From Epithemia pelagica (taxonomy: Eukaryota; Protista; Bacillariophyta), in NCBI GenBank assembly GCA_946965045.2, contig OX337233.1, positions 1,612,001-1,676,000 of the forward strand: a stretch of DNA of 64,000 nucleotides, read 5' to 3'. Positions within the stretch are counted from its first letter, which is position 1. Each line of letters opens with the position of its first letter. Shown here in pieces: positions 5,201-52,800 of the stretch. The notes beneath the pieces are model-generated. The model did no database searches. It worked only from the letters and a program-made list of their open reading frames with translations, and was not told the DNA's origin. The position numbers were made by a program, and so were the translations under genes.

Positions 5201-5455
5201 CTGCTACCCTCATGGGATGCATTCATGGCATTTTGGCCGTTTGTTGTTTTTCTTACGATCAAAATGAGTATTGTCGCGTTCCATGAGGTTCTTTCATGGG
5301 TCAAGCCGATTGTGAAGCTTTTCTCCACTCGAACCAAACCATTCAAAGTCGCCAACAAGCCTTTCCGGCGTTGTCCGCCCCGAACTCGAATCCACAGATA
5401 AAGTGTCGGTTGTTGCATCCCCGTTGATATCTCCATCAAATTACCACGAATTTTA

Positions 5456-29226: not shown

Positions 29227-32069
29227 GTGTTAGAAGCAGCCATAATGGTTTCCCAAACAACTCTGGTTGGCTTCTCCATGGGTTGCCAGTCTCAGGGCCA
29301 TCGCAACCTGATGAAACGAGCGCCAAGGAAAGACCCACCACCCAAAAAGCTCTCCCAAAGGTCAGTCTTTGGTGAGGAAAAGTTTATTCCAGAGAAGGAA
29401 TGCCCAATCTGCAAGGCAAAGGCACTGGGACTTACCAAACCCCACAAAAGCCACCACCAACGCTGCCCACACAACAGGAAGACAAAGGGGCTGGGATCGA
29501 ATGACACTTGGGCAGGGGAAATCTGTGTTGACACAGAGAGGGTGAACAAACTGTTGGCTCAGGAAATGGCAAGGCCTATTGCTGGGCCAGAGACTTGCCA
29601 CCCATCCAACAACAACCAAGAAGCCTTGGAGAGCTTCATGGCTCCTCGCAACAACTGTGCACAAGGTTTGCCCAAACCTTTCGCACTGTCAGTGGATTGG
29701 GATCGTGAGTACGCTGCACGAAGAAAAGCAGAAGAGCGAGAGAAGAAAAACGTTAGCACGCGTCCGGCCCTATTCACTCCCTCAACGGAACTCAACAATA
29801 CTATGGAAACCGTTAAGCCCCCTACCGTAAGTATTCCAAAAAAAAATTCGAAAACTACGAAAGACGTGACAGAACCAGCGCACGCACCTCTTGAAGTGTT
29901 TAAACAACAAATTCTGAGTCGTTGGGCAGATGTGACAGATGATGTGACTGTGCCAAAAATGGTGCACGCGCTTGCGGGCTATATTGCGGACTCGTGTTTT
30001 GGTCACACGCGCAGTACACAGAAATTGCAGTCGTTCTTCCGTGGAATGGCATTTTGTGTACCCCCCATCCGAGGTAACACGTGTGCTCTGTATGATTCAG
30101 TCGTGAACCAGGAAATCTTGGTAGTGGATTGGGAAATGTTCTTCCCCGATCATTCCCTTCGTTGTCCACGATGCGACGGTACTCTCCAGCGTACTCGGTC
30201 TAATTTTTCAAAAAACAAGACTCTGTTTCCGTTGTTTGGGATGAATGGTCCCCCAATGTACGCCATCCTGATGGGGTATAAGTGCCCCTGCTGCCGGGCG
30301 AGCTTCCAGTCCAACGATGGAGAGCTTCTTGCCACATTGCCGATCTACATGGCAAATTGCTACCCGGTCGAGCCGAAGTATGCAAGAGGTAACCAGCATA
30401 TCACTAAGACGGCAACACGACACTTTGAAGGATTGATGCTAATCTACGGAAATGGAGATAAGTGCTCTAGGATGTTGCTAGATGGGATTAACAAGGACTA
30501 TGAGGAGAGAACTGCCTCCTACTACTCATTCTGTAAGGAAGCGAACAAAAAGGGTGAAGACTACCCTGTCAAGGATGGTGAGTGGTTAGTACGTTACCCA
30601 CCTTTGGGAGAAACAATCCGCCAACTCTATGACGATGCTGCAAGTTCAGATTGGACCTGGTACAAAATATCAGATCATGACAGAAACAGACGTGAGATTC
30701 AAGGTGTAAAATGCACAAAAGTCATGGCTCACGACCATACTCATGAAGTCGTGAAAAATTACCCCTCCAGGATCAAGGCTGTTGCATTATGGGATTCCTC
30801 AAATGAGAGAGGTGAAATAGCAGCAGCAGTGTTAGTCCCGACTACTAAAACAAAGGATGTGGCACACGCAACAGAGCAGCTTCTTCGACGTACCTGCTTT
30901 GAGCCGAAGGCAATGTATACTGATACATGCCCACATGGAGAAGATTTTTGGGGATTGTTGGTTCCTGGAGCAAAACTTTGCCTTGGACTGTTTCACTTTC
31001 TACAACGGATATCCAAGACCTTGCGCAATCGCCACATCGACCATGGCAAGGCAATTCGCGCTTTGTGTTTATGAGTACGAAACAGAGGATCTAGAAAAAT
31101 TGTTGGATGCTTTGAAAACAGGAACTCTTTCAAGTGTTGGGCGTTGTTATACTGAAGATGAGATACAAGATATGATGAACACAAAGGTTTTCCGACAGCG
31201 ATACGGAAAGTACTTACGCAAGAAGATACACGGTCATTGCAAGCAACCTTGAGCGATGGAAGGTGCTGTTCAAAGTTGGCGAATCACCCGGGAAGCCTCC
31301 AGGCCAAGGTAGACTAGACCCCAAGACCAACCAAACCTTGTTCACCCACAAAACCCACGATGCAATTGAAAATTGCAAGAAGAAGGCACAATATCTTGCG
31401 GATCCCTTGCCCCTGAACGAAATGTATAGTGAGTTGAAGGCAAATGCAAACTCTAAACATGGGTTGTCTGAATGGGATACTTGCCGGGGTGAGTCAATGC
31501 TTGAGTCCTTCCATGACAACCTGTCCAACTTTGCAAACACAGGCATGAGAGAATCACTTGCCGACAATCTGAACCTCGCAGGAACCGCGCGATACAATCT
31601 TCAGATCCGTCATAGGATCCGAGTCCGAAACAAGTCTGAAGAAGAAAGAGCAAAAATCCCAGCAGGATGGGAGTTTGTGGTGAGTCACTACAATCATAGT
31701 GCACTTGCTCACATCAACAAGTTGGCGATTGGTGCTGGAGCATCGCCACCATTTCAGGACGTCGAAAACTTACCTCAGGACACAGGCGAACGATTTTTTT
31801 CGGAATACCTCGCCGTACGAGCCGAGGTTGCAAGAGTGCCGAAACATCCATTGAATGATCGGTGCCAGTGTTTTCAATGTGGGCGCAGTCCGGTGAGATT
31901 GCCACATGATGCATCGATTCCAATGACAACCACAACAACAACAGCAGGCGACCTTGTCATGGTACGGTTGAACCCGTACAAGAAAGCAAAGACGTCCAGT
32001 GGGCAACAAGCAATGCAACAACAGCACCAAACCACAACAACAGTCCAGCAAACAGATATTGGGGATTAA
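29227..32069 (+). pseudogene. Unclassified large DDE-type transposase with zinc-finger motifs (at least two breaks)
   Basis: CPIC..H..HQRC, CPRC..CPCC, AHDHTH (D1), YTDTCP (D2), GLFH, RGESMLESFH (E). The order resembles the C/DxxH class of DDE transposases. Confidence 0.6.
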
Positions 32070-32082
32070 TTTCCATCAAAGG

Positions 32083-33354
32083 ATGTCTGACCCAGTTCTC
32101 AAGGGGGGCAGCTTGGCTAATCGTTCGAACGATGGGCCCACCGCCTTGCCCTGGGAAGACTCTCCGTCTAGGAAGTCTTCCGTGAGAAGGGCGGGACTGG
32201 CGACGATTCTTTCTGATGAGCAAATATTGGGCAACTTGGAGCAAGACAATAAGGCCACCCATCTTTCTTCAGTCATCCATTGTTTCAAATCTAAGAAAAG
32301 TTCCTCACAACGGACACAGGCTGCCTTGTGTATATTGGAGGCTGGTGGTAAACCACCTCCTTCCTCATCTAAGCGTTTCAGACGACATCAAAACAAACAA
32401 AGGAAGAAAAAAAAACAAAAGCTTCAAAATCTCTTCCAAGTTCCAGATGTGCCAAGCTCCTTCAAATGGAAGAAATCAACGTTGGAAAAGAAAATGATTG
32501 CCTTCCATGATGAACATTTGGCAGATGACACGAAGAACAAAGGCTCCAATAATCAACCATTCTTTTCCCCACTTGCAGAATTGGTTACAACGGATGTGGG
32601 GAGGGCCGGAGCCATATTTCGAACTGATGATTCAACACTGCCTGTTTATATCAAGACGCCTATGAGTGAAATGACAACACCACTTATCCAGAAGAAGATC
32701 CTGTGCATATTTGAGAAATTCGAGGATGAATACAAGACTCCCCAACAAAGAGGTCAATCCCGCTGCGTCGGATTGGAGTCCCACAACTCGTCATATATCA
32801 CAATTGGTAAACATGCCAATCGTGGAGGAAAAGGCATCGTCGATTCAAAAATGAAACTTCTACATTGGAGAGAAAAGGAAACCCTGATTCGGTTCGTACG
32901 ACAAGTGGAAGAATGCTTCTGTCAATGGGTCGACTCCTCCTTTTTAACTGGCTTTTCCGTGATGAAGGCAATCCAGGAAATCGAAACTCTCTCTTTTGAA
33001 GGCAAAGAATCAACCTTTTTCTCTTCCATTGCTTTCGGAAAAAATGTTTTCCTTCCAGCCCATACAGACAACGATTTCTGTTATTCAGTTGTCATGGCAC
33101 TCGCGAGAGAGCCCGAGAAGACAGGTGACGACATCCTATGCTACTTTGTTTTCCCAGAGCATGGGCAGAAAGTTGCAATGAGAAATCTTGACTTTCTCAT
33201 ATTCAATCCACAAGTGTACCATTGTGTTTCAAAAAGGGTAACCCACGACGATGTTTATTGTGCCTCGTTTTACATGAAAACTGTAGTCGTTGGGAAGAAC
33301 GACAACTCCATCCCCCTGAACGACCTTGAACAATGTCTCTGTAATAACTATTAG
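32083..33354 (+). CDS. TET/JBP-like Fe(II) dioxygenase (423 aa from ATG 32083; the frame is open from 31999)
   Basis: Double-stranded beta-helix core: FSSIAFGKNVFLPA-HTD-NDF..YFVFPEHG..VAMRNLDFLIFNPQVY-H-CVS..SFYMK. Basic NLS-like run upstream. Confidence 0.72.
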   Translation: MSDPVLKGGSLANRSNDGPTALPWEDSPSRKSSVRRAGLATILSDEQILGNLEQDNKATHLSSVIHCFKSKKSSSQRTQAALCILEAGGKPPPSSSKRFRRHQNKQRKKKKQKLQNLFQVPDVPSSFKWKKSTLEKKMIAFHDEHLADDTKNKGSNNQPFFSPLAELVTTDVGRAGAIFRTDDSTLPVYIKTPMSEMTTPLIQKKILCIFEKFEDEYKTPQQRGQSRCVGLESHNSSYITIGKHANRGGKGIVDSKMKLLHWREKETLIRFVRQVEECFCQWVDSSFLTGFSVMKAIQEIETLSFEGKESTFFSSIAFGKNVFLPAHTDNDFCYSVVMALAREPEKTGDDILCYFVFPEHGQKVAMRNLDFLIFNPQVYHCVSKRVTHDDVYCASFYMKTVVVGKNDNSIPLNDLEQCLCNNY

Positions 33355-33451
33355 AACTAGTATCTAACACTATCGTTTCATAGGGCAACCAATATCTCCT
33401 AGTGAGCATTTAGTAACTGAGGAGCATGTTTTCTCATATATTATGTTGTTC

Positions 33452-36400
33452 TCAATCAAACTGCGTAAGTCCCAGTTTTGCTCCACGGAATCTTCGACAG
33501 TGACGGGAATGCTCCGAATTTGATGAAACCCATTCTTGGCCATGATTATGGTTAATTCTTTGTGCCATGTCCTTGCGAATAGATCTTGTAAGTTCACGTA
33601 TGCTGGCAACTGGCTTCATCAAATCCACCGCGTTGTCATTATAGTTTGCTGAACAAAACAGCTTCTTAAGGTCCGTGATTTCTTCCATCATTAATTTGAT
33701 AAATGAGCTTGGTACCAGAGTCTCTCCGTATTCTTCATCGCATTTCTCGTGAACATCATCGTCGAAAACATCACCGGACGTTTCATCAACTACAACGTCA
33801 GCAGATATTTCCTCATTGTTTATCTCACATGTTTGCGAAGTGTTTCCGTTTTGACTGTCATCATCATTAGGATAAGGATTGTCAACAACACCAGGAATAG
33901 TTGGTATTGAAGAACCATACTGAGGACCAATATCCTCAGGAGCTACAAAAGATTCTTGTGTTAGAGTTTCATGATTTGCCATTTCAATAGGATTCTCTGG
34001 TAGCAAGAATTCTTGAAACGTATCTACGGCTCTCTTGATTTGTTCGTCGGAATAGTTCACGCACTTTTTTTGTTGTTCTTCTATCCAATCCGGAATATGA
34101 CCTGTCTCCGGACAGTAGCTCCACAACTCCTTCTCATTCCACAACCTGCCTGTTTGTATAGGGAATTTGGGGCCATTGATGTCATTGGTCAAAAGCTCTT
34201 TTAACATGTCGTTCACGGTATTGTCAGTACTTTCATTTGTTGATCGAAAAGCAAAGAAAATATACTTTTTCCACCAAACCACACTCACATCATGGTGTGA
34301 GAATCCGTTATACTCATCGCACTCAAAACTCAAGACTGCCGCTTGATGAGAACATGGATATCCACATCGCTGGAACGTCGAACAAGAACACACCAGTCTA
34401 CCAGTCTCATCCAGTGTGACCGTCCGTGTTCAATGCCAAACAGGATGGAGGCGTTTCCTTTCTGTTTCCAAAACTGTCTGTTCCACATTGATCACATCCC
34501 ATGACCATGGAGACTGTGGTTGTCGTCGTATGGCATATTTGATCCTGTTGTCCCAAGCCTTATTCACTATATCATGGCACAATTCAGTTACCATTCCATT
34601 TAAAGGAAGTCCCGTCTGCTTCATCCAAACAGATTTTGATTCCACTCGACTGGCCGCTAGTCTGACCTGAGAGTTGATAGTGACATCTGATTGGAACTTC
34701 AATATGGCAGCATTAGCTTGCACAGTTCCACCCGGAACAACTGCAGCAGAATGTTCCTTCATACCACAATTTGTCCCTTCATGACTGCTGTTTGTACATT
34801 CATCATAATGTCGAAGATTCTTACGGTAACAATGGACAAGATGCCGGTCATGTAAAAAAACATATCCTGTTAGGAAACGTTGAATTTTCCATCGTAATTC
34901 TCTTGAAAGAAACTTGCGAACATTTCTGGAATGAATATAGGCCAGTAGTAATGACTTTGATGTAATCAATTCGTCTTGAGTCTCGCAATACCTGGGGTAC
35001 ATGAAAGTATAACACCACTGTTTGACAGTGTAGCAAAAGAGTTTGTACTCCCGACTATAGTTTGTATCAATTGCATTACCAAAAGAGCAATGCCGTGACC
35101 AACCTTTATGGATGATGTGCCATCCACATCGAAGACGAACACAATTTGGCATGAACCGTCTACAAGCTTCTTCAACTTCGGTGATTTCATGCGAATCTCC
35201 ATCAGTGATTATTGCTTTTATCTCATTAACCCATTCCCCACCAAGAAGCTTTGGCAAAGCACAGGAGAAAACCCATCGAAATGTCGCTTGTTTTTGATCA
35301 CGCAAGAACATTCGCAGTATAATGATGTACTTTCCAAAGGATGTGCGAGTTGAGGCCGTTAGAAGAGGTCTAGATTCCTTGTTGGTTCCTTCAGTAACAT
35401 CCACCTTGAGAACATGAGGAAATAAGCGGAACATACGCTTCTCCTTGTTTGTGATCCAAGCACATGCGATGAAGAAATTTTGGTCTGGTTGGATTTCCAA
35501 TGTATCCATATCTGCGGAGTATTCATCAAGAATTTCTGCACAAAAGGCAGTCATGTCTGTGACATCTTGTTTCCCATCATCGTATTGGTTCTCACTGAAT
35601 ATCATACCAGCTTGATGCTGGAGTCTTGCATTTATTAGGTTCTGGGGACGGGCCCCCCAAATACAGTAACTCAATTCAGGAGTTGACCGTAACCATTCCA
35701 CGACAGCTTCTGCACCGACTTTAATTCCCTCGTAGTGATATTTAGATTCTGATGCCATAGTACAAAATGCCCACCGCGTTTGCTCGGGTGTAAGTGTAAT
35801 GTCATGATTCGCGTGGAAGAAGTTGCGTCCCAAAGCAGGTCCAGTGTTTGCCTTGCCAAGCTCAGCTGCCCTTTTGCGCTGTTCACGTGTAAGATGTCGA
35901 AGTTTGGTTGGAATGTCTATTGCCATCCGTTTGAAATGGTTACAATGTGTTACTGACCCTGAGCTACGTTTTACATAGAAGCCGTGCATATCGATGTAGA
36001 TGTCAAATCGGAATGAGCATGTGTCTTCGTTTTTGAGTGCGCGATTCGTAACAACCTTCCGTGGACCCTTTTTCCCATCAATTCCCCTGCTGTTGCCTCT
36101 TTTGTCATTGTGTAACGAGATGTTTCGGTGTTCCATTTCAATGCTATTCCCTGGAGGCTGTTTACGCTTCTTGTTGTACCGTCGGTAGCGGTCACACATG
36201 AATGTTCTTGACATGTATGGAGGTTCACTTCCCATTGGAAAAGCCTTACGATTAGCCAATGACTTCTTGTTTGTGTTACCATTCATTACAATAGAAAAAC
36301 CACTCGCAATGGAAGCTCTGGAAATACAGGCTCGTAAGATTGAAAAAGACCCTTGTTCATCAAAAACAGTGCTGGGGTCGGTACAAGGAGGGAATTCATT

Positions 36401-36634
36401 TCTGTTGAAATATGCGTAGTAGCCTTTGATGTGGTCTGCTTGAGGGAGCCATCCAATGAACGCGCAAATGTCGACGTCCATTGTTGTCGCAGTTGAAATA
36501 CAGTCATCTCCAGTGTGCATTGGGAATGTCATAGGTGAGACCCATTCTGTTTCTAAGGAGTTAAAGTATCGGTCCAATTCATATTGAATTCTGTCATGAA
36601 GATTTGTACAATCGTTGTTGTCGTCCATGGTCAA
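33452..36634 (-). pseudogene. MULE/Mutator transposase 1 with SWIM finger; one frame (1060 codons) broken by a single TGA
   Basis: KVDVTEGTN (D), ITDGD (D), CGWH, SSHEG (E), SWIM CSC..CGYPCSH. The two ORFs are in frame across PVWH*TRTV (stop at 34430-34432). Confidence 0.88.
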
Positions 36635-36779
36635 GCACTGGGTGACATATCAAGAGGAGGGTCCAGATGTGGTGAGATGCTCAAGCCGATTCAAATTCCA
36701 ACCGTTATTTGCATTAAGATTATTTAAACACTTTTGGGAATGGCAGGCGGAATTGTGAGGCACGGCAGGTGGCTTGATA

Positions 36780-38480
36780 ACAGGATAGGGATGAGGATAA
36801 GTCTGTGCGTCTGTCCAGTATTTTGGGGACCTATAATGGGATATGTTCTTCTCCTGCCTGTGCTCTCATATCAATACAGGATTCCAAATATAGCGAAGAA
36901 ATATCCAGTCTTGCACAATGTATGTGTACCAATTGTACACTCTTTCTCGTTAAATGCGTCATGCTCACCAGCAAATAAATGAAGAATAAGTTTCTTCGAA
37001 AGTAGGTGAGTACCGGTTGTTACTGATCAACAGTTAGTTGCAAAAGCTTACCCTTATTTCTTTTAACAAATCGCTGTATTCAATGTGGGACTCAGTATTC
37101 TCAGAATCCTCACTGGTTTGTTTGGAATTCGCAAATGGGGGAAATAGGTAAGCCCCTTTGGGCTTAGCGCAACACATATACACCAAAAGCGCGCAAACCA
37201 AGCAGACTTCTGGGTTTTCGTCATCCCTGTATATAGAGAGGGATTGCTCTTCCGTGTCACATTTGCCCTTCACCCAAACAACAATTTCGTCAACACGTGC
37301 CTCTTTTTCTTGTACAACAAAACAGTCCGTTCGAAATTGCGCAAGCCGGATTGAGCACACCTATTCCGCACGCAGGAACAGCTTGATCCACGTAAGTAAC
37401 ATTGTCCAGAGTTGTAAGTGACGGATGTCACCACCTTTGGACATTATATGATTTCGGATAACGCGAACTTGCAGGCTCGACATGTGGAGTGCCCGGCGTG
37501 CTTGTTCTTCAGGACATTGTGTACACGCTGAAATCTCGCAGCGCACTTCACGTCATAAGTCGGATCTCCCCTGGGCTTAACTTTATGAAAAGTACAAGTG
37601 TCACAGGGCTCAAATCGATGCATGTGGGTATTCGACCAGTCAATGGGACCACCAATCAACGTGTTCCGTTCGATACACTTCGGACAAACAGGGCAGTACG
37701 CATTGGCAAACTCAGACGCGCAAAACTCACGGTGCAGAGTAGGAAGAGTGACACGACATTTCCAAATATTGGAGGGATCGGACCACCCCCGGTTCCCTTT
37801 TTTTCACCGTCATGTAGTAACGCGCATGAACCAACAACATACTCCCCTTTTTGAGGACCGTTCACAAATTTCACGTGGTTGTTGTGTAGGTCTTTCACAC
37901 GGTTCAACGGGGAAAGGGACTTGTACTGGTAGAAAGTCCCCACCATATTCGGATACGCTGGGAGAGGATCTTTAGGGCGTTGTTTATCACTGCAGATTGT
38001 AGCAGTGAGATAGTCCCCGATCAGAAACGCAAAGCCACCCAGCTCTAGCCAGTATTTGTTGTACTGGGGAAGTGTTTTGTCCGTCCCGTCGTGACTTCCT
38101 CGTAGTTGGTCTGTCACAGCATGGGCGTAGTCATTTGTAGGCGCCGTCATTGCCCATTTGTTTATTGTTGAGATAATACAAGACTCCATTTGATCATTGT
38201 CCTCCTTTCTCAGTGTAGTCACTACAACATCGCCCTTTTTGCATGGTTGTCGTCGTCGTAAGGTACCTGTCTCTGTCACAATAGAGCCAGTAGACAGTTT
38301 TGATTCCACAGTTCCTACAGCATTCACTCTCTCCATGGTTTCTTGAGTCATCCAGGCAAGAGTTTTTGTTTGATTGTTGGGTGTGGGTTGGTACAGAGGA
38401 AGATGAGGTCGACCAAAATGATCGATGCCATGGATCGTTGCATTGGAAGTTGGTGGGGTCTTCCGAATGCATTTAGGCAT
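36780..38480 (-). pseudogene. Second Crypton-like tyrosine recombinase, degenerate, with a predicted 58-bp intron (36994-37051)
   Basis: LWTMLLTWIKLFLRAE (Arg), VKGKCD (Lys), CLVCALLVY, YLFP. After splicing GTAAGC..ACTCAC..AG the frame reads IGTHTLCKTGYFFA (HxxR, with R changed to C). Confidence 0.68.
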
Positions 38481-41279: not shown

Positions 41280-43298
41280 ATGGATTTTCCTCGAGCTTCC
41301 CAAAAACAAGCAATAGTGCAGGATAAGGGCGAGGCAATGAAAAAGGGGGAAGAGGAGGATTGCAAGAAAAAACAAGACGAGGGCAAGCCAATGGAGGACC
41401 AGCATATGAAAGAAGATGGACAACCAATAGTACAGGATAAGGGCAAGAAGGCGATTCAAAAAGGGGCACCAGGCAATCTTTCTGCACCTGATTCAAATCA
41501 CCGGTTGAACCGGGAATTCACCCGACAATTGGATGATGTTGTACAAACACCAATGACGTTTGAGATGACCTTGAACAGGTACAAACAGGAGTACCGGAAT
41601 CGATGGCATTGGTATGAGGTTGAATCTCTTCCGATCTTTGGTCCACAAGGAATCCCAGAAACTTGTAGGCTGGAATTGCCAATCTGCAATTCAGACGATC
41701 TTGGGAGTATTTTGTCTCATATTGTCGTCACTACACCCAAGATAAAACCAAAGTGGGGTCCAAAAGACGTGGGAGAACGGGAGCAGAGAAAGAGATGGTG
41801 GCAATTGATTTATTCAGGAAGACATTATTCACTCAGGCCTTGGATATGTGGACGCGATGTTTTGTGAACTCTGATGGTCCACCAAAGAATTTAGATTTGG
41901 TTACAAAAAAATTTGTCTTGTCACATGGTCTGATTCAGGAGAGCGATGACAAGGCATGTGCTTTAGCGGAGGGCTTGAAACAGCATCTACTTTGAAGGAA
42001 TGCGAGGTATCGGAAGACTGTGGATGTTAATGTCCAAACTATTATTTGGACTCTGAAGCACATGGCAAAGGTCTTTACGTGTCTTCATCCAGACAGACTT
42101 ACGATAAGTGAAGAAGAGGTCATGGGCAAAAGTTTGATTTATGCATTGCCTGGAGGGTGGCTTAAAGATGCAGAGTTTCTACCATCCTTTCCCAGGTATC
42201 CACATCGATCTTTTGACCAAATGGTCCATATCTACACACAATATCCTGTGTTCCAAAATAGACATACACAAGAAGAGGAAATACAAGAAAGAAGGGCTGT
42301 ATCAAAGAAGAAAAAGACATTGCCCAAATTTTTCTCGAGTTTCGATTGTCAAAATATGCTCGATGTCACGACAGAAAAGAAGAAATCGTCTTCTAAGCAT
42401 TCTGCTCTGGGATATCACAATGAACCTGTCCAGAAAAAAAGAAAAATAGTATCAGAGGGACATGGTGTAGGTGTCATGAGTAAAGAAGACAAATCTCCAA
42501 AAGTGTCGGAGGGACATGGTATATGTGACACAAGTAAAGAAAACAAATTGACAAAATGGCTTCCCCCTGAGCCACAGACACATGACAGCTTTCAGGGTGA
42601 TGCTCTTGTTGTTGTCAAAGAGGACCCAGAAGGTACGCTTCAGAAAATTATTGATTGCGATCCACAACCTCCTGGATTGGAACTTCAACTTATACCAAAG
42701 CCTCAACAACAAGATCGAGAGTTCTGGTCAGTTCTCCCACGGGTTGGGCGAGATTACAAAGAATTTTGTGTTCATACAAAACCTTTGCGCTCGGTCGCCA
42801 AATCTAAGTCGCCTGGTTTGGCATACCCTGTTATTCCAATGCCGTGAATGTGCAAAATATAACAAGACACTGACCGTCAAGGCTCCACATAAATACATTT
42901 CATTCTTGTCTTTTGCTGAGACTGATACAAATTCATGGTAAAAGATCGTGGAGCACTGGATGACTGGACTGAGAGATGGAATGGATCAGCCATTTTCTCT
43001 TCTTGACAGTTTTCTGACGTTGTGTTGCCACAATTATCATAATGAAAGAGTGTGTCTTTTTTACATCTTGAAACCAGATCTTACCAGATCACCAAGGGAG
43101 ACACTCGCCCCACGATCATGGAAGACTGACAAAGCTGAAAAAGTCTTGGTTCTTCTTGGTTCAGGTAGTCCACATGTGGCGTTCCTTTGGATTGATTTGC
43201 GACAAGAACTTATAGATTTGTATGACACTGTCTCGCGAACAGAAGATTCATATTCAGATGGGCACAAGATACCCGAGGATTCCACAGACAGTTTTTAG
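41280..43298 (+). pseudogene. Fragmented hypothetical ORF(s) upstream of MULE 2; the distal part may be Ulp1-like
   Basis: Successive ORFs broken by stops. HVAFLWIDLRQELIDLYD in 42948-43298 resembles the Ulp1 His/Asp segment. Confidence 0.3.
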
Positions 43299-43469
43299 TC
43301 TATTTTCCTTCTTGGGAATTTCCAATGATCAACAAGAGCACACCAGCCAAACTGAAACACCAACGCCAGCCAAACTGAGACAAACAACAATCCACTTCCA
43401 ACTCCTGCCAGATTCAGCTTCTTTCCAGCCAACTTGTTGGTCCATGTCACCTACCTCAATGGTAAACCC

Positions 43470-46400
43470 AACTTTCTTCGACCATGGATGGCGATTCTTC
43501 CCAAAGTGTGCAACTTGCAATAAATCGGGCTATTGATCGACACTTCCATTGGCAAGCTGAACTTTTCTTCACAGATGTGGAGAGTTTTGATGGCTCTGTT
43601 GACCTTTTCCATTTCACTGACAAGCACAAGTATACAGCTCAGTGAATTTCCCTGCAAAACAGGAATGGCCACAAACACAAAGACCCCCCTTCAGTAATAT
43701 TTGACAGAACTTTATATCCACCAACAGATCAAGGTATGAAGAAACTTTTCACCGCAATCAAAGTAGAAGGCATCAAACAAGGCACCAATGTGGTCAGTCG
43801 AAGCAAGACACATGTATTGTTGTGTTATTGCTGCCGAAGATACATGCCCAAACATCCTTTTCTTCAAAACCAAGAGAACAATGCACCCACATTATCTTCA
43901 GTTGTAACAGACAGTAACCAGACTGACAATACACAGCATCCCTTCAATGACATCTCAAACAATGCACATAGCAACCTTGGGAAAGAGAACAAATCATTTG
44001 ACGAAGATGGTGTTATGGTTGGAATTCAAAGATATCATTATCATCGTGATCGAAGCTATTGCCAAGTTGATGGGAAGACATCCAATCGTGGTACTTGCAC
44101 AATGCGACCATTTGAATCAGAGGAAACATGCAAAGTTTCCCTTCGTTTTGGTGTTAAAGAAGGCCCCAATGGATACATCTATCTTAAACAAGGCTGTGGT
44201 CACAACCTTCATTCATTTCATCCGAAGCCGCAGAAAGGTGATTTGCATTTCCAAAAGAGACATTTCTTGAGCAAATCCTCTCAACTAATTGCAAGTGGTG
44301 GAAGGGCTTCCATGGGAAATGGTGCACTCCAATATATTGTCTTGGAAAATCAGCAAGAACTGGTCTCATGTGGATCAATTCAACGACTCCAACTTGATTC
44401 AACAGCTTCACAAATGGTAAACTGGATACGGACAAATGCAGCTGACCCCAATATCAACTTACGTTATTGCTTCTTGTCTTGCACTGGAATCAACAATTCA
44501 GGTTATCATCGCCATCCTAAAGGTCGCCCCCCACAACATGGCAGGATTCCAATTGCTCAAGTAGAAGAGAATATGTCATTTTCCGATACGCTTGAGAACA
44601 TGTGCAGGAGGGGAATTAATAGTGAGGAAGAATCTCATGTTCTTCCCATCGACGACAGTGATGGTGGACTGCAAGACTCTCTATAAATGTTTCAAGAGAT
44701 CCACAGTTCTGATTGCCACTTTGATCTGACATCAAGGAAGATTCTTCTAGGAGCTGGATGGATTTACGAAGAAGCATACCTATATTTCCAGAGATTTCCA
44801 GAAGTCTTGTTCATCGACTCAACACACAAGACAAACAATGAGGGACGTCCTCTTCTGATGATATATGGTAGGGATTTGCATGGGAAAGGGTTCGGGTTAG
44901 GGTTACATGTATTTTCATGCCAAATGAAACAAGTGCTTTCTACAGATGGGTGTTTTTGAAGTGGCTGCCATGCCTTTTGGGTGTCCAAAACATGGAACGG
45001 GTCAGACTAGCCATCACTGATGGAGACGGTCAAGAATTTGAAGCTGTTAAAGAATCTTGTCTCCGTTATCTTGTTAATGTTCGTCGTGGAAGATGTAGGT
45101 ATCATATCGTTCAAAAAACATTCAAAAGATGCATTTCAAATCACATTTGTCTCAATCCCACTGGAATGGCAGTTCTCAAGGCAATCAAAACATGGATATA
45201 CACATGGGGTGATGGTTCCTCATGCATATCTGAGGAACAGTTTGATCTATCCAAGGGGCTTTTATTGTTGAAGATGAAATCAAGCCACCTACGTTCCTGC
45301 ATCACAGAGGATGGATTAATGTCACTTGATAGGTGATTGCAAGAAAAAGTTTTCCCCCCTTGACAAATCGTTTGTTTTCTGGCGTAAACGCTACTTGCGA
45401 TGCTATGATGAATACATGAACAACTCAGGTGAATCAATGAATCGGTCATGTAAACATTCCGATCTAGGAGCAAGACTCAACATGACCATGACTACTTCTG
45501 CCAATGCAATGCTAAGTCATTCGTCATTGTCCACGGAGGATAGGAAAAGCACACAAATCCGCCAAATGGTTGAGGTTCCATTGTTTATCAAGACTGATTC
45601 CAAGCACAATAATGATGTACTCTGCAGTTTTCAGAGTGGAAACATTATACAGTCCTTCACTACAATGAAAACGTTTGGTATGTCCTCAGGAATTCTGTCT
45701 CTCCAAGATCTGAGTTTCGGGAGTTGTCCCCTCCATTCTTTAAGAAAGCCTGGTGTGTGAAGCTCAATTTGAATGGGGTCTTCTTAACCTGTGACTGTGG
45801 ATACCTCCATCCTTTAAGAAAGCCTGGTGTGTGAAGCTCAATTTGAATGGGGTCTTAACCTGTGACTGTGGATACAAACAGCGCAATGGGATTCCATGTC
45901 ACCATTTGTTTGCTATCAAAGACAACTATGACTTATCAGTTCGATGGCAGATTGCATATGGATACTATGCTTACGATCATGGCTACCAAGAAATTACAGA
46001 CTCTTACATTTGAGGTCATACATGCGAGCACGACGGGATTAACATGAAAACACAGTTACTGTAACAACACATTATTTCCATATGTATGGTCGGGAACTCA
46101 GTACTATTCAATTGAGAAGATTTGTGAAGTATTCCATTGTCTGATTCCTTTATAATGGAATTACCAAGTTCACCAGTATCCGGAAAATTATCAAGAAGTT
46201 CCCAATGAATCAGGAAAAGAGAACAATGATGACTTATGTAATCATAATGACATTGATGAGGCGTCCGATTTTCAGTTCACTCAAGAATCAATTAAACTTG
46301 ATCCAGTGTCGTTTGCAGTTCCTCTGACCAGAACAGTCACTCATGCCCAAATTTTGACAATGGTGAAAGACATGCTACCGTGTTATTTCAATCTGATAAA
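43470..46400 (+). pseudogene. MULE/Mutator transposase 2 with SWIM finger, decayed
   Basis: LFIDSTHKTNNEGRPLL, AITDGD, CRYH, NSGESMN, SWIM CDC..GIPCHH. Collinear with MULE 1; the start coordinate is approximate. Confidence 0.82.
45731..45875. repeat. Tandem duplication of about 74 bp inside MULE 2
   Basis: CTCCAT..GTGACTGTGGATAC starts at 45731 and 45805. Confidence 0.85.
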
Positions 46401-46609
46401 TCCCGTCAAGAGCTGTCTTGTCATGTTTTGTATCGTACACGGGTGAAGCAGAGTCGTCATCTCAATTCCATGACTCAAAATTCCAATACAAATAATGTCT
46501 TCAAATATTCCGTTTGACAACAGTCGCGTGTCAACTCAAAATACGTACATGTGCAATCGCTTTCAGTCTACTACATAGTATCTTTTGGAATATTAATAGC
46601 TTTGGATTG

Positions 46610-47009
46610 TTATTTTGTACCAAGTATTTCAGCAACACTCTCTTGAGATGGTGTAAGAGGGACAGAATTGTCATTTCCACCAACAACTGATGTCTCCAGG
46701 TAGCATGACAGACAAATGATGTCTTGTTCCACTGTCTTTTCCATATCACAATGAAAATGACGTGGATTGAAAACCAAAACATCAAGATGTTGAAGAGAAA
46801 CTGCATAGCCATGCTCTGGAAATACAAAATAGCACAACGGTTTCTCATGTACATTTCTGGCTGATTCAGTGGTGACCATTGCTGTAACAACAGAATATCC
46901 AAAGTCATCATCTTTGTGTGCCTGCTGTAAGAAGACATTACAACCGTATGCAATGGCAGGGAAAAACTGTGTTGCCTTGTTGTTTGTGTGCCTGCTGTAA
47001 GAAGACATT
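46610..47009 (-). pseudogene. TET/JBP-like dioxygenase 2, C-terminal half
   Basis: FPAIAYG(C/R)NVFLQQA-HKD-DDFGYSV..YFVFPEHG..FNPRHF-H-C..SCYLETSVVGGNDNS; clearly homologous to 32083-33354. Confidence 0.75.
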
Positions 47010-47438
47010 GGGTGCTTACTGAAACAAGTATAACAACATAACTGACCGACATAATCATAAATGCATCGGGCCCATAACCTCTTTAGTTTCATTTTGGAGA
47101 CCAAAAATGCTCGGCACTCAGCCCCGTCGAGCAAACGAGAAACCTAAACACAACAACAACACAAAATCCCCAACGCATGCAAGATAGCGGCTGGCGTTCT
47201 ATTTAATATATAGATCTGATGAATACATACAACTTTGGTCTTTGGTTTCCCCCAACAGATAGGTTCTAGCCTCGATACACCTCTCTCCTCCCCCTTCCCT
47301 CCACATTCCCTTGCACCATGGAAGTGGCAGACTCCCAACGACCCTTGTTGGAGTCGGACTCGAGTGAAGAGGATTCAACCATGATGCCTTCCTCCCCACA
47401 AAGTCATTCCTCAAGAAGAAGACGCAATCAATGTTTCG

Positions 47439-48542
47439 GTGGAAGTTCAACGCCAAGATGCTGCAAAGGTGGCACAACCCGACTCTCCCTCCTCATCATC
47501 GGAGTCAGAAGCATCTGCTCTTGTGACCAGGCGAGAATCTCCTCGCCTTGCCCTCAAGCGCAAGATCCAAGAGCAAGAGGAGAAGAGGAAGAAGAACAAG
47601 AAACAAGTTCCCAAGACAAAGAAGCCGAAGGCCTCCAAGACAGCAGCTCCTCCTCCACCTCCACCTCCACCTCCACCCGTTGTCCCCAAACACCGTGGCA
47701 ATGGTGGTGCAGGTCGTACGAAAGGGCCTACGTACCAATTCTCTGAGGTGGATGCCTTACTCGATATCCTACAGGACCGTCTTCCTGCTTCATCAGATGA
47801 ATGGGACGGTGTAACCGAGGTGTACAACAAACAACACCCTGGTCGCGAGCAAAACAAGGATTCGCTCAGGAGGAAATTTAATTCCCTCCATAATAAGAAG
47901 GTTCCTACAGGCGATCCTTCCATCCCGCCACAAGTAAAACGCGCCAAATATATTATGCAGGAAATCTGTGCGCGTGTGAATGCAGGCGAAGGTGTGGATG
48001 ACGAGGAATTGGGAATCGAAGCTGAAGAGGCCCAAATCCGCCGGACCCAGCTCTTCCAAAAAGAACAGGAACAAGATGTGGCGAACGTGACAGCTTCGCA
48101 TCATGGTGGAGATGGACCACCTTCTTCTATAGTTGTGAACCAATCTTTGAAGACCGGGCGAACGCCATTCCGTCGCTCTCCCAAGCAAGAAGCTTTGGAA
48201 AAGAAGGAAGCCAAGGACAAAGAAAAGTCGGATCTTATGACTTGGCTTATCATGTCAATGCAAGCGAAACAGGAAAATGACGAGAAGGATCGCAAAGAAA
48301 GGCATGAACAGTCGACTTCTATGCAGCAGATGATGTTTGCCCAAATGCAGCAACAGATGCAACAACAGCAAGAAGCTGCAAGGCGAGACCAACAGCGGTT
48401 CATGCTAATGATGAGCAGTATCTTCGGACAACGCAGTGGAAGCATTGAGACAAACACCGCGAACGTGATGAACAACACGATGAACAACATGACTAACAAC
48501 AGTGGACAACCCAAAGATGACCGTCAATACGAGGAAGTCTAG
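47439..48542 (+). CDS. Harbinger Myb/SANT-like DNA-binding protein (the true start may be upstream, at ATG 47318)
   Basis: FSEVDALLDIL..EWDGV..SLRRKFNSL..PTGDP trihelix motif with a Gln/Met-rich tail. Confidence 0.75.
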   Translation: MEVQRQDAAKVAQPDSPSSSSESEASALVTRRESPRLALKRKIQEQEEKRKKNKKQVPKTKKPKASKTAAPPPPPPPPPPVVPKHRGNGGAGRTKGPTYQFSEVDALLDILQDRLPASSDEWDGVTEVYNKQHPGREQNKDSLRRKFNSLHNKKVPTGDPSIPPQVKRAKYIMQEICARVNAGEGVDDEELGIEAEEAQIRRTQLFQKEQEQDVANVTASHHGGDGPPSSIVVNQSLKTGRTPFRRSPKQEALEKKEAKDKEKSDLMTWLIMSMQAKQENDEKDRKERHEQSTSMQQMMFAQMQQQMQQQQEAARRDQQRFMLMMSSIFGQRSGSIETNTANVMNNTMNNMTNNSGQPKDDRQYEEV

Positions 48543-48565
48543 ATAAGAAAACAATTAGTAGTAGT

Positions 48566-48998
48566 GAGTAATTGGAACGGGCGGTAAACATCTACCTCTA
48601 TGGTAGGAGTAATTGGAAAGGGCGGTAAACATCTACCTCTATGGTAGGAGTAATTGGAAAGGGCGGAAAAGATCTACCTCTATGGTAGGAGTAATTGGAA
48701 AGGGCGGTAAACATCTACCTCTATGGTAGGAGTAATTGGAAAGGGCAGTAAACATCTACCTCTATGGTAGGAGTAATTGGAAAGGGTGGTAAACATCTAC
48801 CTCTATGGTAGGAGTAATTGGAAAGGGCGGTAAACATCTACCTCTATGGTAGGAGTAATTGGAAAGGGCAGTAAACATCTACCTCTATGGTAGGAGTAAT
48901 TGGAAAGGGTGGTAAACATCTACCTCTATGGTAGGAGTAATTGGAAAGGGCGGTAAACATCTACCTCTATGGTAGGAGTAATTGGAAAGGGCGGTAAA
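48566..48998. repeat. 41-bp minisatellite, about 10.5 copies
   Basis: GAGTAATTGGAAAGGGCGGTAAACATCTACCTCTATGGTAG repeated from 48566; the last unit starts at 48976. Confidence 0.95.
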
Positions 48999-49052
48999 GA
49001 TGAACAACACGATGAACAACGTAACAATTAGTAGTAGTTCATGCGGAAGTCA

Positions 49053-50225
49053 CTAGTAGTTATTCATTGCTTGCAAAGCATTTTGACAAAGTTCTGGCAT
49101 GTAGACAGTTTGGATCTGGTTGAATCCGACTGTTGAGGCACGAAAATTATACAACAAAACAATCATACGGAGGATGATGCGCCATTCACCAACTTCTTCA
49201 TAGGGCAGTCTGTCTTTCAAGCGGGGGAATGAGGCTTGAAGGCCCCTCATTCCCCATTCAGACAATTGACGGACTGATGTTGCCGCGTGATGAATGTTCT
49301 GATTCATTCGGACATTGCCATCTTGGTCAAAGTTTGTCTGGTGTGATTTGAGGAGTGACGGCCGACTTTCCCGTCCAAAAGCTGAATCAACCACCACTTG
49401 TGCACCACCATGGGTCCTCTCCCGGTCGTTGATTTCATCTAGTTTGTCGTAGATAGATGATACCGATGCCAGAGTTGAATCATGCCATGATCCGGGCGCA
49501 TTCAAGAGACAGGCCCGGATCAGGCCATCTGGCGAAAACACGAAAAGGTTAGACACATAATGATCATGAGTCCACCCATTGTAGAACATATTCTGTACCG
49601 CTTCGTTTGTGGCCACAAGGAGTTTTAGTCCATCCATAGCCGCCCAGATATTGACAAGATTTGGATACTTGTTGCGGATGAGTTGTTTGAAGCGAGTTAC
49701 TTCTTGTGGAGAGGGAAGCTCAACACGAGCATCGGGGTGGCCTGCGAGCACCTTGACCAAAATCCTCCTACCAAATCGCAACCACACGGACAATGGGTTG
49801 GCTGTGAGGCCGAATATCAACTGCAAGACTTTAAGTGATCCTCTAGTACGCGTCCATACCAACACCAAACCAAGGCCCATAACAGCATTGATCATCCTTG
49901 GTCTCCCTCCTGGCTTCCCTGATAGACGTCGCATGTGGCCTGGGTTAGTGTGCGACTGTGGATATGGAGTATACACATCAAACATTGGGCAGAACAGGCC
50001 TAATAACAGGTGAAAAGCTCTATGGTCGAGACCACACAGGGTGATGAGAGCGTCATCCTGCATTGACCTATACAGATGCATAAATGCAGATTTTCTTGGG
50101 ATCATCAACGCTCCCCTACGAATGACAGCACGTCCTAGGAACGCATTGTCATCCTGCCATTCAACTTCGTCTTCCTCATCACCAAGCTCCTCAAGGAGCA
50201 GTAGCAGAACCGCATATTCAAACAT
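49053..50225 (-). CDS. Harbinger DDE nuclease (DDE_Tnp_4-like), 390 aa
   Basis: AMDG, NAPGSWHDS, VVVDSAF, SVRQLSEWGMRGLQ. Confidence 0.88.
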   Translation of the reverse strand: MFEYAVLLLLLEELGDEEDEVEWQDDNAFLGRAVIRRGALMIPRKSAFMHLYRSMQDDALITLCGLDHRAFHLLLGLFCPMFDVYTPYPQSHTNPGHMRRLSGKPGGRPRMINAVMGLGLVLVWTRTRGSLKVLQLIFGLTANPLSVWLRFGRRILVKVLAGHPDARVELPSPQEVTRFKQLIRNKYPNLVNIWAAMDGLKLLVATNEAVQNMFYNGWTHDHYVSNLFVFSPDGLIRACLLNAPGSWHDSTLASVSSIYDKLDEINDRERTHGGAQVVVDSAFGRESRPSLLKSHQTNFDQDGNVRMNQNIHHAATSVRQLSEWGMRGLQASFPRLKDRLPYEEVGEWRIILRMIVLLYNFRASTVGFNQIQTVYMPELCQNALQAMNNY

Positions 50226-50484
50226 TGTTCTTCTTTGCGATTACACGGCGGAGGGAGGGTTGGAGGGAAGAAAAAGAACTCTTCGGGGGGAAAGCGGTGC
50301 TCGCGTTTATATCCTATATCCAGTTCCTAAGTCTATATAAATCATTTTGACGAAGTGCCATTGCGTTGTGTTTGAGTAGGTGAAATTTCAATTTTGGTTT
50401 CAGTGCGTCCAACAGGCTTAAACTAAAACTTATTGGTTATGTTGTCGTTATGTTAGGTCCTGTACTTAGTTTCAGTAAGCACCC

Positions 50485-51010
50485 ATTACGACCGTATGCA
50501 ATGGCAGGGAAAATGGTGTTGCCTTGTTGTTGTGTTGTAGCATGGAAAAATTCCCATGGGACGAGGCATTTTTGAAAGCAGAGAGAAATGAAGAATCCAC
50601 CCACTCAGCAAATTGGTGTTCAAGTTGTTTCATGAATCAAAACAACATATTGCGCTCATCTTCTTCCAGCAGGTGTAACTTTGATTCAACCATTCCAGGA
50701 CCACCACGATGGGCATTAATGCCCATAATCATGTACTTAGAGTTATGCTCACTTTTTCTGATGAAGCGTGACTGTCCTCGAGAATGATCTGGGCAGCGGG
50801 CTTCAATTTTTTTTAGTACATCCAACAATTCCTGGAAAAAGGATTTTGTCAGACATGGAAGACATCAGTAACATCCACTGACATGGCACTTTTGCCAGAA
50901 TTATGCGTCACTTCCTTCAGATTGCGACAAATTTCATCAGGTACAAGAACCTTTGTTTGTCCTGTCCTCTGGGCTGAAATCATAGGCCATTTCACCATCA
51001 CTGCAATCCA
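50485..51010 (-). pseudogene. TET/JBP-like dioxygenase 2, N-terminal half (may extend to about 51830)
   Basis: RGQSRFIRKSEHNSKYMIMGINAHRGGPGMVESKL..WVDSSFL..FPAIAYGRN aligns with RGQSRCVGLESHNSSYITIGKHANRGGKGIVDSKM..WVDSSFL of copy 1. Confidence 0.75.
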
Positions 51011-51245
51011 CCTCCTTTTGTTCAAGCTTTCAATGAATAGTCTCCGACTGTAAGACCGGTGCTTGCTCTATCCCGTTTACTGGTGCATCCCCCTGGGGAG
51101 AAGCACCTTGGGACGAAGAGGTGAGACCCAAACCACAAGGGTTTTTGGGTCCAAGCTGCCACTTTGGAGGGCAAGCATTGACTTTATATTCATTATGCAA
51201 CAACAAAATGGAGACAGATTTCACTCAACCAAACACAACTTTTGG

Positions 51246-51800
51246 ATCATTCATTCGACTTACTGTTCTAAGTCGCGAAGCAATTGAAATTCTGGGTGAC
51301 TGGGAGATGGAAATGGAGACTGTCTGCTCTCAACCAAACACAACTTTTGAACCATGAACGGTAAGAAGAGACGAAAAGATACACCGTTAGAATCGTCTTG
51401 TTGCGGGCTTTACGGCAATATATTGCGATCATTCATTCGACTTACTGTTCTAAGTCGCGAAGCAATTGAAATTCTGGGTGACTGGGAGATGGAAATGGAG
51501 ACTGTCTGCTCTCAACCAAACACAACTTTTGAACCATGAACGGTAAGAAGAGACGAAAAGATACACCGTTAGAATCGTCTTGTTGCGGGCTTTACGGCAA
51601 TATATTGCGATCATTCATTCGACTTACTGTTCTAAGTCGCGAAGCAATTGAAATTCTGGGTGACTGGGAGATGGAAATGGAGACTGTCTGCTCTCAACCA
51701 AACACAACTTTTGAACCATGAACGGTAAGAAGACGAAAGATACACCGTTAGAATCGTCTTGTTGCGGGCTTTACGGCAATATATTGCGATCATTCATTCG
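51246..51800. repeat. 182-bp tandem repeat, three copies plus a partial fourth
   Basis: ATCATTCATTCGA starts at 51246, 51428, 51610 and 51789. Confidence 0.93.
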
Positions 51801-52429
51801 ATTTACCGTTCAGGAACTGTCATAGACAAGGAAGGCAAAGGTGCTTAGTTTGTAGGTTTTTGGGGTGTTTTTCAACAGGTTTTTGATGACACAAGTAGTG
51901 CTGGTGCAGTGATGATCACACCTGATGTGCCAGTTGGATCTCTGAATGTTGAAGGTAAAGAAAGCCGGGCGTGCCAGGTCAGAGATTAAACATTTTTACC
52001 TATTGGATAAAAACTAGGTTACAAATTTTTTACATTTCGACAAAAATATGGGAAAGACAGACAGACGGCTTGGGGAAAAGCGACTGAGTGGTAAGAGGTG
52101 GCTCCTAATACTCAGGGTTATTTTTACCTTGGTCGAGTGGTTCGAGCCTTTGGTCATGATGGTCTCGGTTCCTGGGTGTCCAGGGTTCGAGTCCGCTCTG
52201 ATAAGGTAGTTGGGAGGGCTAGATGTGGGGCCCGAAAAAGCGGTTCGTCTATGTGGCCCCTTGTGTCACAAGCGGGCTGTCCCCTCGCTCCGTGATACCG
52301 AGTGTCATGGCGCCCGGGCAGTCGGTCGGCGTCACGTTGCGGCGTGCGTGCGGCAGCTGGAAGAATAGACTATTCCCTTTTTTTACACTCAGGTTATTTT
52401 TAATGGCTCGTGCTACTGAGTCCAATTAT

Positions 52430-52800
52430 ACAGATGGGTAGCTCAAGCTGATCAATGCCTGTCGTCTTTACCACGAAGTGGTGGTTCTGAGCGACGTTGT
52501 ATCACCAGATGGGAAGATCATTGCACAAGAATTTATTCAAGGGCGTCGATCATCCTACTCAACTGCGAAAGGATTGATTCCGTATCAAGATAAACTGGGA
52601 CCTCGAGCATGGCACCTTCGAGAAAGTTTCTAAAACTGTTTACAATCCACCAATCGAAACATCGTCGTGCTACTCCTCTTGGCCATTGGACAGTAACTAG
52701 TAACGCAACCCTGCGTCAGTCGCATTACTATTTCTCTCCACACCACACTCAACTATTTGTTTACAGTACTGGCCAGTATCAAGTGTTTGCCCCAACTCTG
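52430..52800 (+). pseudogene. Non-LTR retrotransposon post-RT fragment (Ambal-like)
   Basis: INACRLYHEVVVLSDVVSPDGK..PLGHW pattern typical of the region after RT in this group. Confidence 0.5.

Follow-up and report, generated by a model that had tools for sequence, protein, structure and literature searches.

A probable relic of a Mutator-like element carrying a TET/JBP-like dioxygenase gene in the diatom Epithemia pelagica

The window analyzed here is a stretch of 64,000 nucleotides from the diatom Epithemia pelagica (assembly GCA_946965045.2, contig OX337233.1, positions 1,612,001 to 1,676,000 of the forward strand), and coordinates refer to it unless another locus is named. Positions 43484-51811 of the window are very probably the decayed remnant of an autonomous Mutator-like element (MULE) that carried a TET/JBP-like dioxygenase gene as cargo. 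The remnant, which we call copy 2, is a dead relic: its transposase and dioxygenase genes are both pseudogenes, and the dioxygenase gene is split by a PIF/Harbinger transposon. A preliminary description of the window had recognized here a second, diverged copy of a MULE/dioxygenase cassette hidden by a Harbinger insertion, and had taken the same layout in two diverged copies (copy 1 lies nearby) as a sign of a conserved element architecture. Our analysis confirms the observation and supports the interpretation. The features of copy 2 are as follows (terminal inverted repeats are abbreviated TIRs and open reading frames ORFs hereafter).

43484-46560, plus strand: MULE 2, a full-length Mutator-like transposase pseudogene of transposase clade 2, with 13 stops or frameshifts
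45730-45875: 74-bp tandem duplication in the SWIM zinc-finger region of MULE 2, two copies at 94% identity
46610-47009, minus strand: C-terminal half of dioxygenase 2, with H-K-D, the second His, and YLET..GGNDNS; stop codon at 46610-46612
46913-46982: unit 1 of a 70-bp tandem duplication
46983-47009 and 50488-50530: unit 2 of the 70-bp duplication, interrupted by the Harbinger
47010-50484: PIF/Harbinger transposon; both of its ORFs are open, its two ends form a perfect inverted repeat of 16 bp (GGGTGCTTACTGAAAC), and it is flanked by an ATT duplication
50488-50861, minus strand: part of dioxygenase 2 upstream of the insertion, RGQSR..HNS..RGG..WVDSSFL, with one in-frame stop and one frameshift
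51245-51811: non-coding tandem array, 182 bp x 3.1, upstream of dioxygenase 2; counterpart of the arrays of intact elements (177-180 bp)

The pseudogenes were chained by read-through for alignment, with X placed at the breaks, and genes were read without spliced models. In tblastn comparisons, MULE 2 was collinear with residues 1-1006 and 17-1055 of the transposases of two intact relatives (loci L035 and L037), at 30-66% identity per segment. Its fragments match the Pfam models MULE, ZSWIM1-3_RNaseH-like, and SWIM. The MULE domain is recognized in them at E values of 3.6e-4 and 7e-4, below the cut-off, and in intact relatives (PF10551) at 3e-15 (L035) and 8e-7 (L031). The SWIM zinc finger (PF04434, E 2.7e-4, window positions 45831-46013) lies C-terminal to the catalytic domain, and it is also present in the intact relatives. 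The end of MULE 2 is separated by ~50 bp (46561-46609) from the stop codon of dioxygenase 2, a pseudogene that extends on the minus strand from ~50861 to 46610 and is thus convergent with MULE 2. The C-terminal half of dioxygenase 2 is 45-53% identical to 20 genomic dioxygenase copies.

When the Harbinger, one ATT, and one unit of the 70-bp duplication were removed in silico, the dioxygenase gene was rejoined in a single frame, reading ..FPAIAYGRNVFLQQAHKDDDFGYSVV.., then GGNDNS, and ending at the stop codon at 46610-46612. The rejoined protein keeps H-K-D and the distal His (..HFHC..). The remaining lesions are an in-frame stop (..NMLF*FMKQ..), several stops further upstream, and a 1-nt frameshift between ..NNKATPF and FPAIAYG, which is the indel of unit 2; the two units differ by 3 mismatches and this 1 indel. 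The preliminary description was borne out in the Harbinger TIRs and ATT at 47010-50484, in the tail-to-tail gene pair, in the junction that it gave for the rejoined gene, and in its statement that the ORF called at 46610-47134 on the minus strand is a chimera, as the start of this ORF sits in Harbinger sequence. The local duplication, which it had put at roughly 65 bp, exists and measures 70 bp.

Copy 1, used for comparison, consists of two genes separated by a spacer of 97 bp (33355-33451).

32083-33354, plus strand: dioxygenase 1, an intact ORF
33452-36634, minus strand: MULE 1, transposase clade 1, with one break; convergent with dioxygenase 1

Immediately upstream of copy 1, at 27135-28334 on the plus strand, an ORF encodes a hAT C-terminal dimerization domain (E 5e-16).

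The two cassettes had been described as independent and diverged, and this is supported. The sole DNA match between 29000-37500 and the Harbinger-excised copy 2 is 73 bp at 71% identity, so the high DNA identity that would betray a shared recent origin was looked for and is absent. The two halves of dioxygenase 2 do align with dioxygenase 1, at 43% identity over 210 aligned columns (tblastn aligned 108 aa at 49% and 107 aa at 41%). The transposases of the two cassettes are ~25-34% identical. The identity of MULE 2 is 23-35% with transposases of clade 1 and 44-69% with those of clade 2, and in trees the two cassettes carry transposases from different deep MULE clades. The near absence of DNA similarity, together with the low protein identities, excludes a recent segmental duplication. 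Copy 2 is of value as an independent and diverged witness to the architecture and to how old the association is.

We searched the 60.5-Mb, 23-contig genome assembly with the catalytic half of dioxygenase 1 and obtained 41 matches at ~31 loci. At ~20 of the 31, distributed over 11 contigs, searches with transposases placed a MULE tail-to-tail with the dioxygenase, and chaining on the fetched loci agrees with this count. All 17 loci with a full-length dioxygenase are convergent with a MULE (17/17); the unpaired loci are fragments. The intact or nearly intact elements fall into five families.

Family A: reference L031, 1482-7216; TIR 60 bp; dioxygenase 422 aa, transposase 1061 aa
Family B: reference L042; TIR 34 bp; dioxygenase 427 aa, transposase 1177 aa
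Family C: reference L035, 2523-9007; TIR 92 bp; dioxygenase 484 aa, transposase 1006 aa
Family D: reference L037, 2260-9077; TIR 36 bp; dioxygenase 559 aa, transposase 1061 aa
Family E: reference L041; TIR 45 bp; dioxygenase and transposase both nearly intact

Within a family, the identity between copies is 96-99% over the whole length from one TIR to the other. It does not continue past the 34-92-bp TIRs, which lie outside both genes and are followed by unrelated flanks. The TIR termini are similar within each transposase clade and different between the clades. The whole mobile units are 5.7-6.8 kb long. Because the TIRs lie outside both genes and entire units recur at 96-99% identity, the dioxygenase is cargo of the element, and these data show that it transposes together with the transposase. 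Locus L048 proved 100% identical to L037 in a word-based protein search, which returned almost solely this genome, and L048 therefore adds no independent support.

These results bear on two explanations in which the pairing of the genes would have no meaning for the element itself. If the cassettes were neighbors by chance, in a region crowded with transposons, or had both arisen from a single segmental duplication, one might point to the abundance of transposons in the window (hAT, Harbinger, and MULEs) and to the distance of merely ~7 kb between copies 1 and 2. However, the cassettes lack DNA similarity, the transposase clades to which they belong are ~24% identical, and the layout is repeated, inside TIRs, at ~20 loci on 11 contigs. 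The genome-wide pairing, the TIR limits, and the missing DNA similarity refute this explanation, which we regard as extremely improbable. The preliminary argument for a conserved architecture rather than chance adjacency is strongly supported by the pairing at 17 of 17 full-length loci, by TIRs around both genes in five families, and by near-identical copies in unrelated flanks.

The dioxygenase could instead belong to a host gene family beside which MULEs preferentially insert. Homologues without an adjacent MULE do occur in Cyclotella cf. meneghiniana and in metagenome contigs, but in E. pelagica the TIRs enclose both genes, the 5.7-6.8-kb units recur at 96-99% identity in unrelated flanks, and no full-length dioxygenase was found outside a MULE. 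We consider a host gene family very unlikely. The nearest named relatives of the proteins of this genome are diatom proteins, from Cyclotella cf. meneghiniana and Cylindrotheca closterium. The neighborhoods of 12 foreign homologues of the dioxygenase and of 3 foreign relatives of the MULEs contained no MULE-dioxygenase pair; most of these foreign contigs are short, and they are therefore weak evidence that the pair is absent elsewhere. On two metagenome contigs (L055 and L056, GC content 35%), a dioxygenase homologue with 26% identity lies on the same strand as, and downstream of, a gene for a protein with Helitron_like_N and PIF1 helicase domains, and it may be a TET-like gene in a Helitron.

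The intact relatives follow a standard design. Between two TIRs come, in order, a non-coding array with a period of ~178-182 bp, the dioxygenase gene, a spacer (~35-290 bp), and, in the opposite orientation, the MULE/SWIM transposase gene. The array lies between the start of the dioxygenase gene and the TIR, and with its period of 177-182 bp it was found in families A-E, in the element at L047, and in copy 2; the family of copy 1 has lost it. The number of units ranges from 1.8 to 9 and varies among copies of one family, and no sequence similarity was detected between array units of different families. The arrays have stops in all frames in the direction of the dioxygenase and are non-coding in that direction. 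Their origin as duplicated 5' coding sequence was considered and ruled out by these stops and by the lack of the N-terminal motif of the dioxygenase. The spacers between the convergent gene ends are 35-97 bp in most families and 287 bp in family D (e.g., L031 3762-3812 and L035 5803-5843). With so short a shared spacer, the transcripts of the two genes must overlap or terminate within it. The dioxygenase is under purifying selection. Within families, its ratio of nonsynonymous to synonymous substitution rates ranges over 0.09-0.65, that of the transposase over 0.22-0.40 (from small difference counts), and intact dioxygenase ORFs persist in families that are just 39-49% identical.

The assignment of the dioxygenase rests on conserved residues and on a predicted fold. 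H-x-D, a distal His, and one Lys are invariant in 49 sequences, and the H-x-D...H iron-binding triad of a double-stranded beta-helix is thereby present. The AlphaFold2 (AF2) model of the family C protein, a relative of dioxygenase 2, has a core with a predicted local distance difference test score (pLDDT) of 75-90. When this model was used as a Foldseek query against the PDB, ranks 1-25 were all TET/JBP enzymes, with CcTet first (E 7e-9), followed by CMD1, TET2, and NgTET1 (to 4e-5); FTO/AlkB ranked after them. The template modeling (TM) scores are modest, at 0.3-0.58, and identity to characterized TET enzymes in the structural alignments is 10-15%. We therefore describe the predicted protein as TET/JBP-like and claim neither membership in a curated family nor a substrate. 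An exhaustive profile search found 1115 clusters at E values up to 1e-3, indicating that the dioxygenase family is widespread but unnamed. All of the dioxygenases share a conserved N-terminal motif (LKGGRL..GLTAL..RAGL), which forms in-frame repeats of 60 aa (180 nt), with 2.6 units in family D (L037 7078-7551) and two in family C.

Several observations weigh against the reading of copy 2 as the remnant of a MULE with a TET/JBP-like cargo. No TIRs were found for copy 2 when 43000-43900 was compared with 51400-52600 by blastn-short or when TIR patterns of clade 2 were used, and no target-site duplication was found for it either; its ends are therefore inferred. The limits of 43470 and 51830 given in the preliminary description mark where recognizable homology and the array stop, and in that sense they stand, but as element ends they are unproven. 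The termini of copy 2 seem to be eroded. Beyond the right-hand limit, a tRNA-like stretch at ~52080-52200 was considered and discarded, as ARAGORN reports no tRNA there. The 8-11-bp target duplication typical of MULEs was not found in any of the eight intact copies with both ends (8/8), the only match being 5 bp at L038. The copies checked, with their two end positions, were the following.

L031 1482/7216, L032 2785/9414, L035 2523/9007, L038 614/6357
L037 2260/9077, L041 2520/7950, L044 757/6363, L042 2413/8537

The protein assignment has its own difficulties. There was no relevant Pfam match (Tet_JBP or PF20515) in the intact dioxygenases or in 44 foreign homologues, and the sole contact with Pfam is that of the dioxygenase 2 fragment to PF20515 (Tet-like 2OG-Fe(II) oxygenase, for 2-oxoglutarate [2OG] and iron), with an E value of 3e-4 and 21.2 bits, below the family cut-off of 27. 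In addition, no invariant Arg was seen among the 49 sequences at the place, after the distal His, where 2OG is customarily bound by an Arg. Near that place stands the invariant Lys (Y-x-K; residue 457 in the protein of family C), a possible substitute for the Arg.

To our knowledge, TET/JBP enzymes are the only enzymes known to act on the methyl group of 5-methylcytosine. The predicted enzyme would oxidize a modified base on the DNA of the element, most likely 5-methylcytosine, and would thereby counter methylation-based silencing. We put this forward tentatively, as a function that the putative enzyme might well have. The enzyme might instead make another base, such as 5-hydroxymethyluracil from thymine (in the manner of JBP or of dinoflagellates) or a CMD1-type adduct, and would then not demethylate the element; such a base could serve transposition, the termination of the converging transcripts, or even silencing. 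Thymine hydroxylases and CMD1 do belong to the TET/JBP family, the family is very distant from characterized TET enzymes (10-15% identity in structural alignment), the 2OG-binding Arg seems to have been replaced, and with gene ends 35-97 bp apart in most families, the transcripts must converge. According to PMC11572971 and the discussion in PMC12730594, a dinoflagellate TET/JBP homologue that makes 5-hydroxymethyluracil is linked to transposon silencing. On the other hand, the best-supported precedent for transposon-borne TET/JBP genes has been interpreted as anti-silencing (PMC12730594). Nothing found here separates the candidate substrates; we consider a product of this other kind rather unlikely, and oxidation of 5-methylcytosine the better guess.

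We next compared the histories of the two genes. The transposase tree contains two clades that are 2.4 substitutions per site apart, clade 1 with B, copy 1, E, and A, and clade 2 with C, copy 2, D, and L047; the neighbors of MULE 2 are D, L047, and P0181. The dioxygenase tree recovers every family as monophyletic and places copy 1 with A, in agreement with the transposase tree. Identities between dioxygenase families are all 39-49%, and the families form a star-like clade whose main split separates {copy 2, E, B} from {D, C, copy 1, A}. Groupings from the transposase tree, named after the trees had been seen, were imposed on the dioxygenase in approximately unbiased (AU) tests.

E + copy 1 + A, fully supported in the transposase tree: p 0.009, rejected
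C + D + copy 2 (clade 2), no outgroups, unrooted: p 0.17, not rejected
A + copy 1 + B + E (clade 1), with outgroups: p 0.32, not rejected

The preliminary description had named incongruent trees as grounds for abandoning its interpretation. The comparison divides: both genes of each family cluster together, but the deep nodes differ, E is misplaced (p 0.009), and the distances across clades are discordant. This partial incongruence neither refutes a shared element nor points to chance adjacency; it suggests that the cargo module has been exchanged between elements. When the 44 foreign homologues are added, the seven E. pelagica lineages of the dioxygenase fall into a single clade (support 100), and foreign MULEs, which are 38-46% identical to clade 2 and include one from Cylindrotheca, branch between clades 2 and 1. 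The path across the clades is 3.35 substitutions per site for the transposase and 1.38 for the dioxygenase (0.4 of the transposase value), although within clades the dioxygenase is the faster gene, by a factor of 1.1-2.4. The single dioxygenase clade, the low cross-clade distance, and the interposed foreign MULEs together favor a dioxygenase radiation that postdates the split of the MULE clades, which would imply transfer of the cargo between lineages. The cargo module was thus probably swapped between MULE lineages by recombination, though shifts in rate are a possible explanation as well.

The competing account is strict co-divergence of transposase and dioxygenase since one ancient capture, with the discordance due to unequal rates and with no exchange of cargo. 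Layout, spacer, and array are alike in both clades, and grouping of the dioxygenases by transposase clade was not rejected, either unrooted or with outgroups. The deep topology tests thus leave co-divergence standing, which is a further point against our interpretation, and the case for exchange rests mainly on the distance ratios. Co-divergence is nevertheless hard to reconcile with a dioxygenase that is the faster gene within clades and the less diverged one across them, with foreign MULEs that fall inside the clade split while the dioxygenases of this genome form one clade, and with the significant misplacement of family E. Within clade 2, furthermore, dioxygenase carriers interleave with elements that bear an unrelated cargo. 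Strict co-divergence is an appreciable possibility, but we judge it less probable than exchange.

The unrelated cargo is an orphan ORF, which occupies the same convergent position in clade-2 MULEs without a dioxygenase. Its 413-aa (L047) and 750-aa (L065) versions are 39% identical, the family shares the motif C-x-F-H-D-D-D-L-N-D, and the transposases of its carriers interleave with those of D and copy 2. The MULEs without a dioxygenase on C8, C16, C2, and C5 were judged from search coordinates.

L047 3227-4465, minus strand: orphan cargo; a 177-bp x 7.4 array lies upstream, at 4508-5813
L065 273-2525, minus strand: orphan cargo of 750 aa
C7:1807272-1808521, C18:2661599-2662720, C7:3278661-3279785, and C2:594649-595773: other sites of the orphan cargo family

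The L047 protein has no Pfam match and no profile similarity to the dioxygenase by hhalign; a protein atlas and the word search were uninformative, as was its AF2 model (pLDDT 31) with respect to fold. At C10:1899181-1900435, fragments of the orphan ORF and of the dioxygenase adjoin on the same strand. These elements raise the possibility, which we regard as doubtful, that this group of diatom MULEs has a fixed cargo slot (convergent and preceded by an array) in which at least two unrelated cargos have been swapped between elements, that array and enzyme make up a portable module, acting on chromatin or against silencing, and that its exchange decides which element lineages remain active. In such a scheme, what would be conserved in the array is its period of ~178-182 bp, roughly the size of a nucleosome, and not its sequence.

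As for the history of copy 2, it very probably arose long ago by an independent insertion of an element whose transposase belonged to a clade other than that of copy 1. After insertion, it gained stops, frameshifts, and two tandem duplications of ~70 bp, and in a later step the still-intact Harbinger landed in its dioxygenase gene. The two duplications are of similar size (74 bp at 45730-45875, and 70 bp at 46913-47009 plus 50488-50530), and there is one in each pseudogene.

The Harbinger insertion itself is well defined. It contains two ORFs and, between them, a tandem array.

49053-50225, minus strand: DDE transposase, 390 aa (Pfam DDE_Tnp_4, E 1.1e-13)
47439-48542, plus strand: second ORF, 367 aa, DUF6818 (Pfam PF20681, E 2.7e-13)
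48561-48998: tandem array, 41 bp x 10.7, between the two ORFs

A DDE_Tnp_4 transposase, a second ORF on the opposite strand, short TIRs, and a 3-bp target duplication are all as in other PIF/Harbinger elements. It differs from them in that the duplications seen here are ATT and ACT, whereas the usual one is TWA, and in the lack of any Myb/SANT match in the second ORF, which hits DUF6818 instead. The ATT flanks lie at 47007-47009 and 50485-50487. Contigs from three public runs of this organism (one study) cross both junctions without differences. Contigs from other copies of the Harbinger, at ~3x the depth of the flanks, leave the window exactly at 47009/47010 and 50484/50485 and have ACT on each side, which fixes both the ends of the transposon and its 3-bp duplication. 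Over the 41-bp array, read depth is many times that of the flanks, so this unit is plentiful across the genome.

All three runs contain a contig, about as deep as the flanks, in which position 46983 is followed by 11 other letters and then by position 50547; neither the Harbinger nor unit 2 of the 70-bp duplication is present in it. The runs comprise ~120 million letters of contigs against an assembly of 60 Mb, so this contig probably represents the other haplotype, where the site is empty. In that case, the Harbinger insertion would be recent and heterozygous.

Iyer et al. (2014), as cited within a later survey by Kojima, reportedly described fungal DNA transposons that encode TET/JBP proteins. 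In that survey, 11 lineages of fungal DNA transposons are listed as carriers of TET/JBP genes, which have passed from one lineage to another (Kojima, 2025; PMC12730594). The carriers are Kyakuja-Dileera-Zisupton, hAT, Harbinger, IS3EU, EnSpm, ESTA, Plavaka, and Helitron elements; MuDR is mentioned for other cargos alone, and diatoms are not mentioned (PMC12730594). The elements described here resemble the fungal ones in being autonomous DNA transposons with a TET/JBP-type dioxygenase beside the transposase, in their expansion within one genome, in the apparent passage of the dioxygenase between transposon lineages, and in the proposed role, escape from silencing by methylation. They differ in their host, a diatom, and in their carrier, as the Mutator superfamily is missing from the 11 listed lineages. 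They also differ in that the protein has no Pfam TET match at threshold and that an array with a conserved period of ~178-182 bp precedes the gene. In the literature that we found, TET-carrying transposons are described in fungi alone and none is a Mutator element, and a full-text search returned none described in diatoms.

Mutator-superfamily elements with a second gene that acts on their own epigenetic state are known as well, namely the plant VANDAL MuDR elements, which encode anti-silencing proteins, and MuDR (together with Harbinger) elements of Phytophthora, with SET methyltransferase genes (PMC12730594). Their cargo proteins, however, are unrelated to 2OG/Fe(II) dioxygenases. Among diatoms, a MULE of Phaeodactylum tricornutum that was mobilized into the UMPS locus is 3.7 kb long, has 9-bp target duplications, and carries an E3-ligase-like second ORF (bioRxiv 10.1101/2023.01.02.522487). 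Like the E. pelagica elements, it has long TIRs and, besides a transposase with MULE and SWIM domains, a second ORF, whereas the latter are 5.7-6.8 kb long, yielded no target duplication, and carry a dioxygenase.

Transposon-borne TET/JBP genes are viewed as a counter-defense against methylation by the host. Several young, intact diatom MULE families, each with a TET-like gene under selection and an array of conserved period, would extend the phenomenon to another eukaryotic supergroup and to another transposon superfamily. The same genome also supplies natural controls, in dead copies such as copy 2 and in sister elements with a different cargo. As elements with intact and with broken dioxygenase genes occur side by side in one genome, the anti-silencing hypothesis is directly testable by comparing their methylation and activity.

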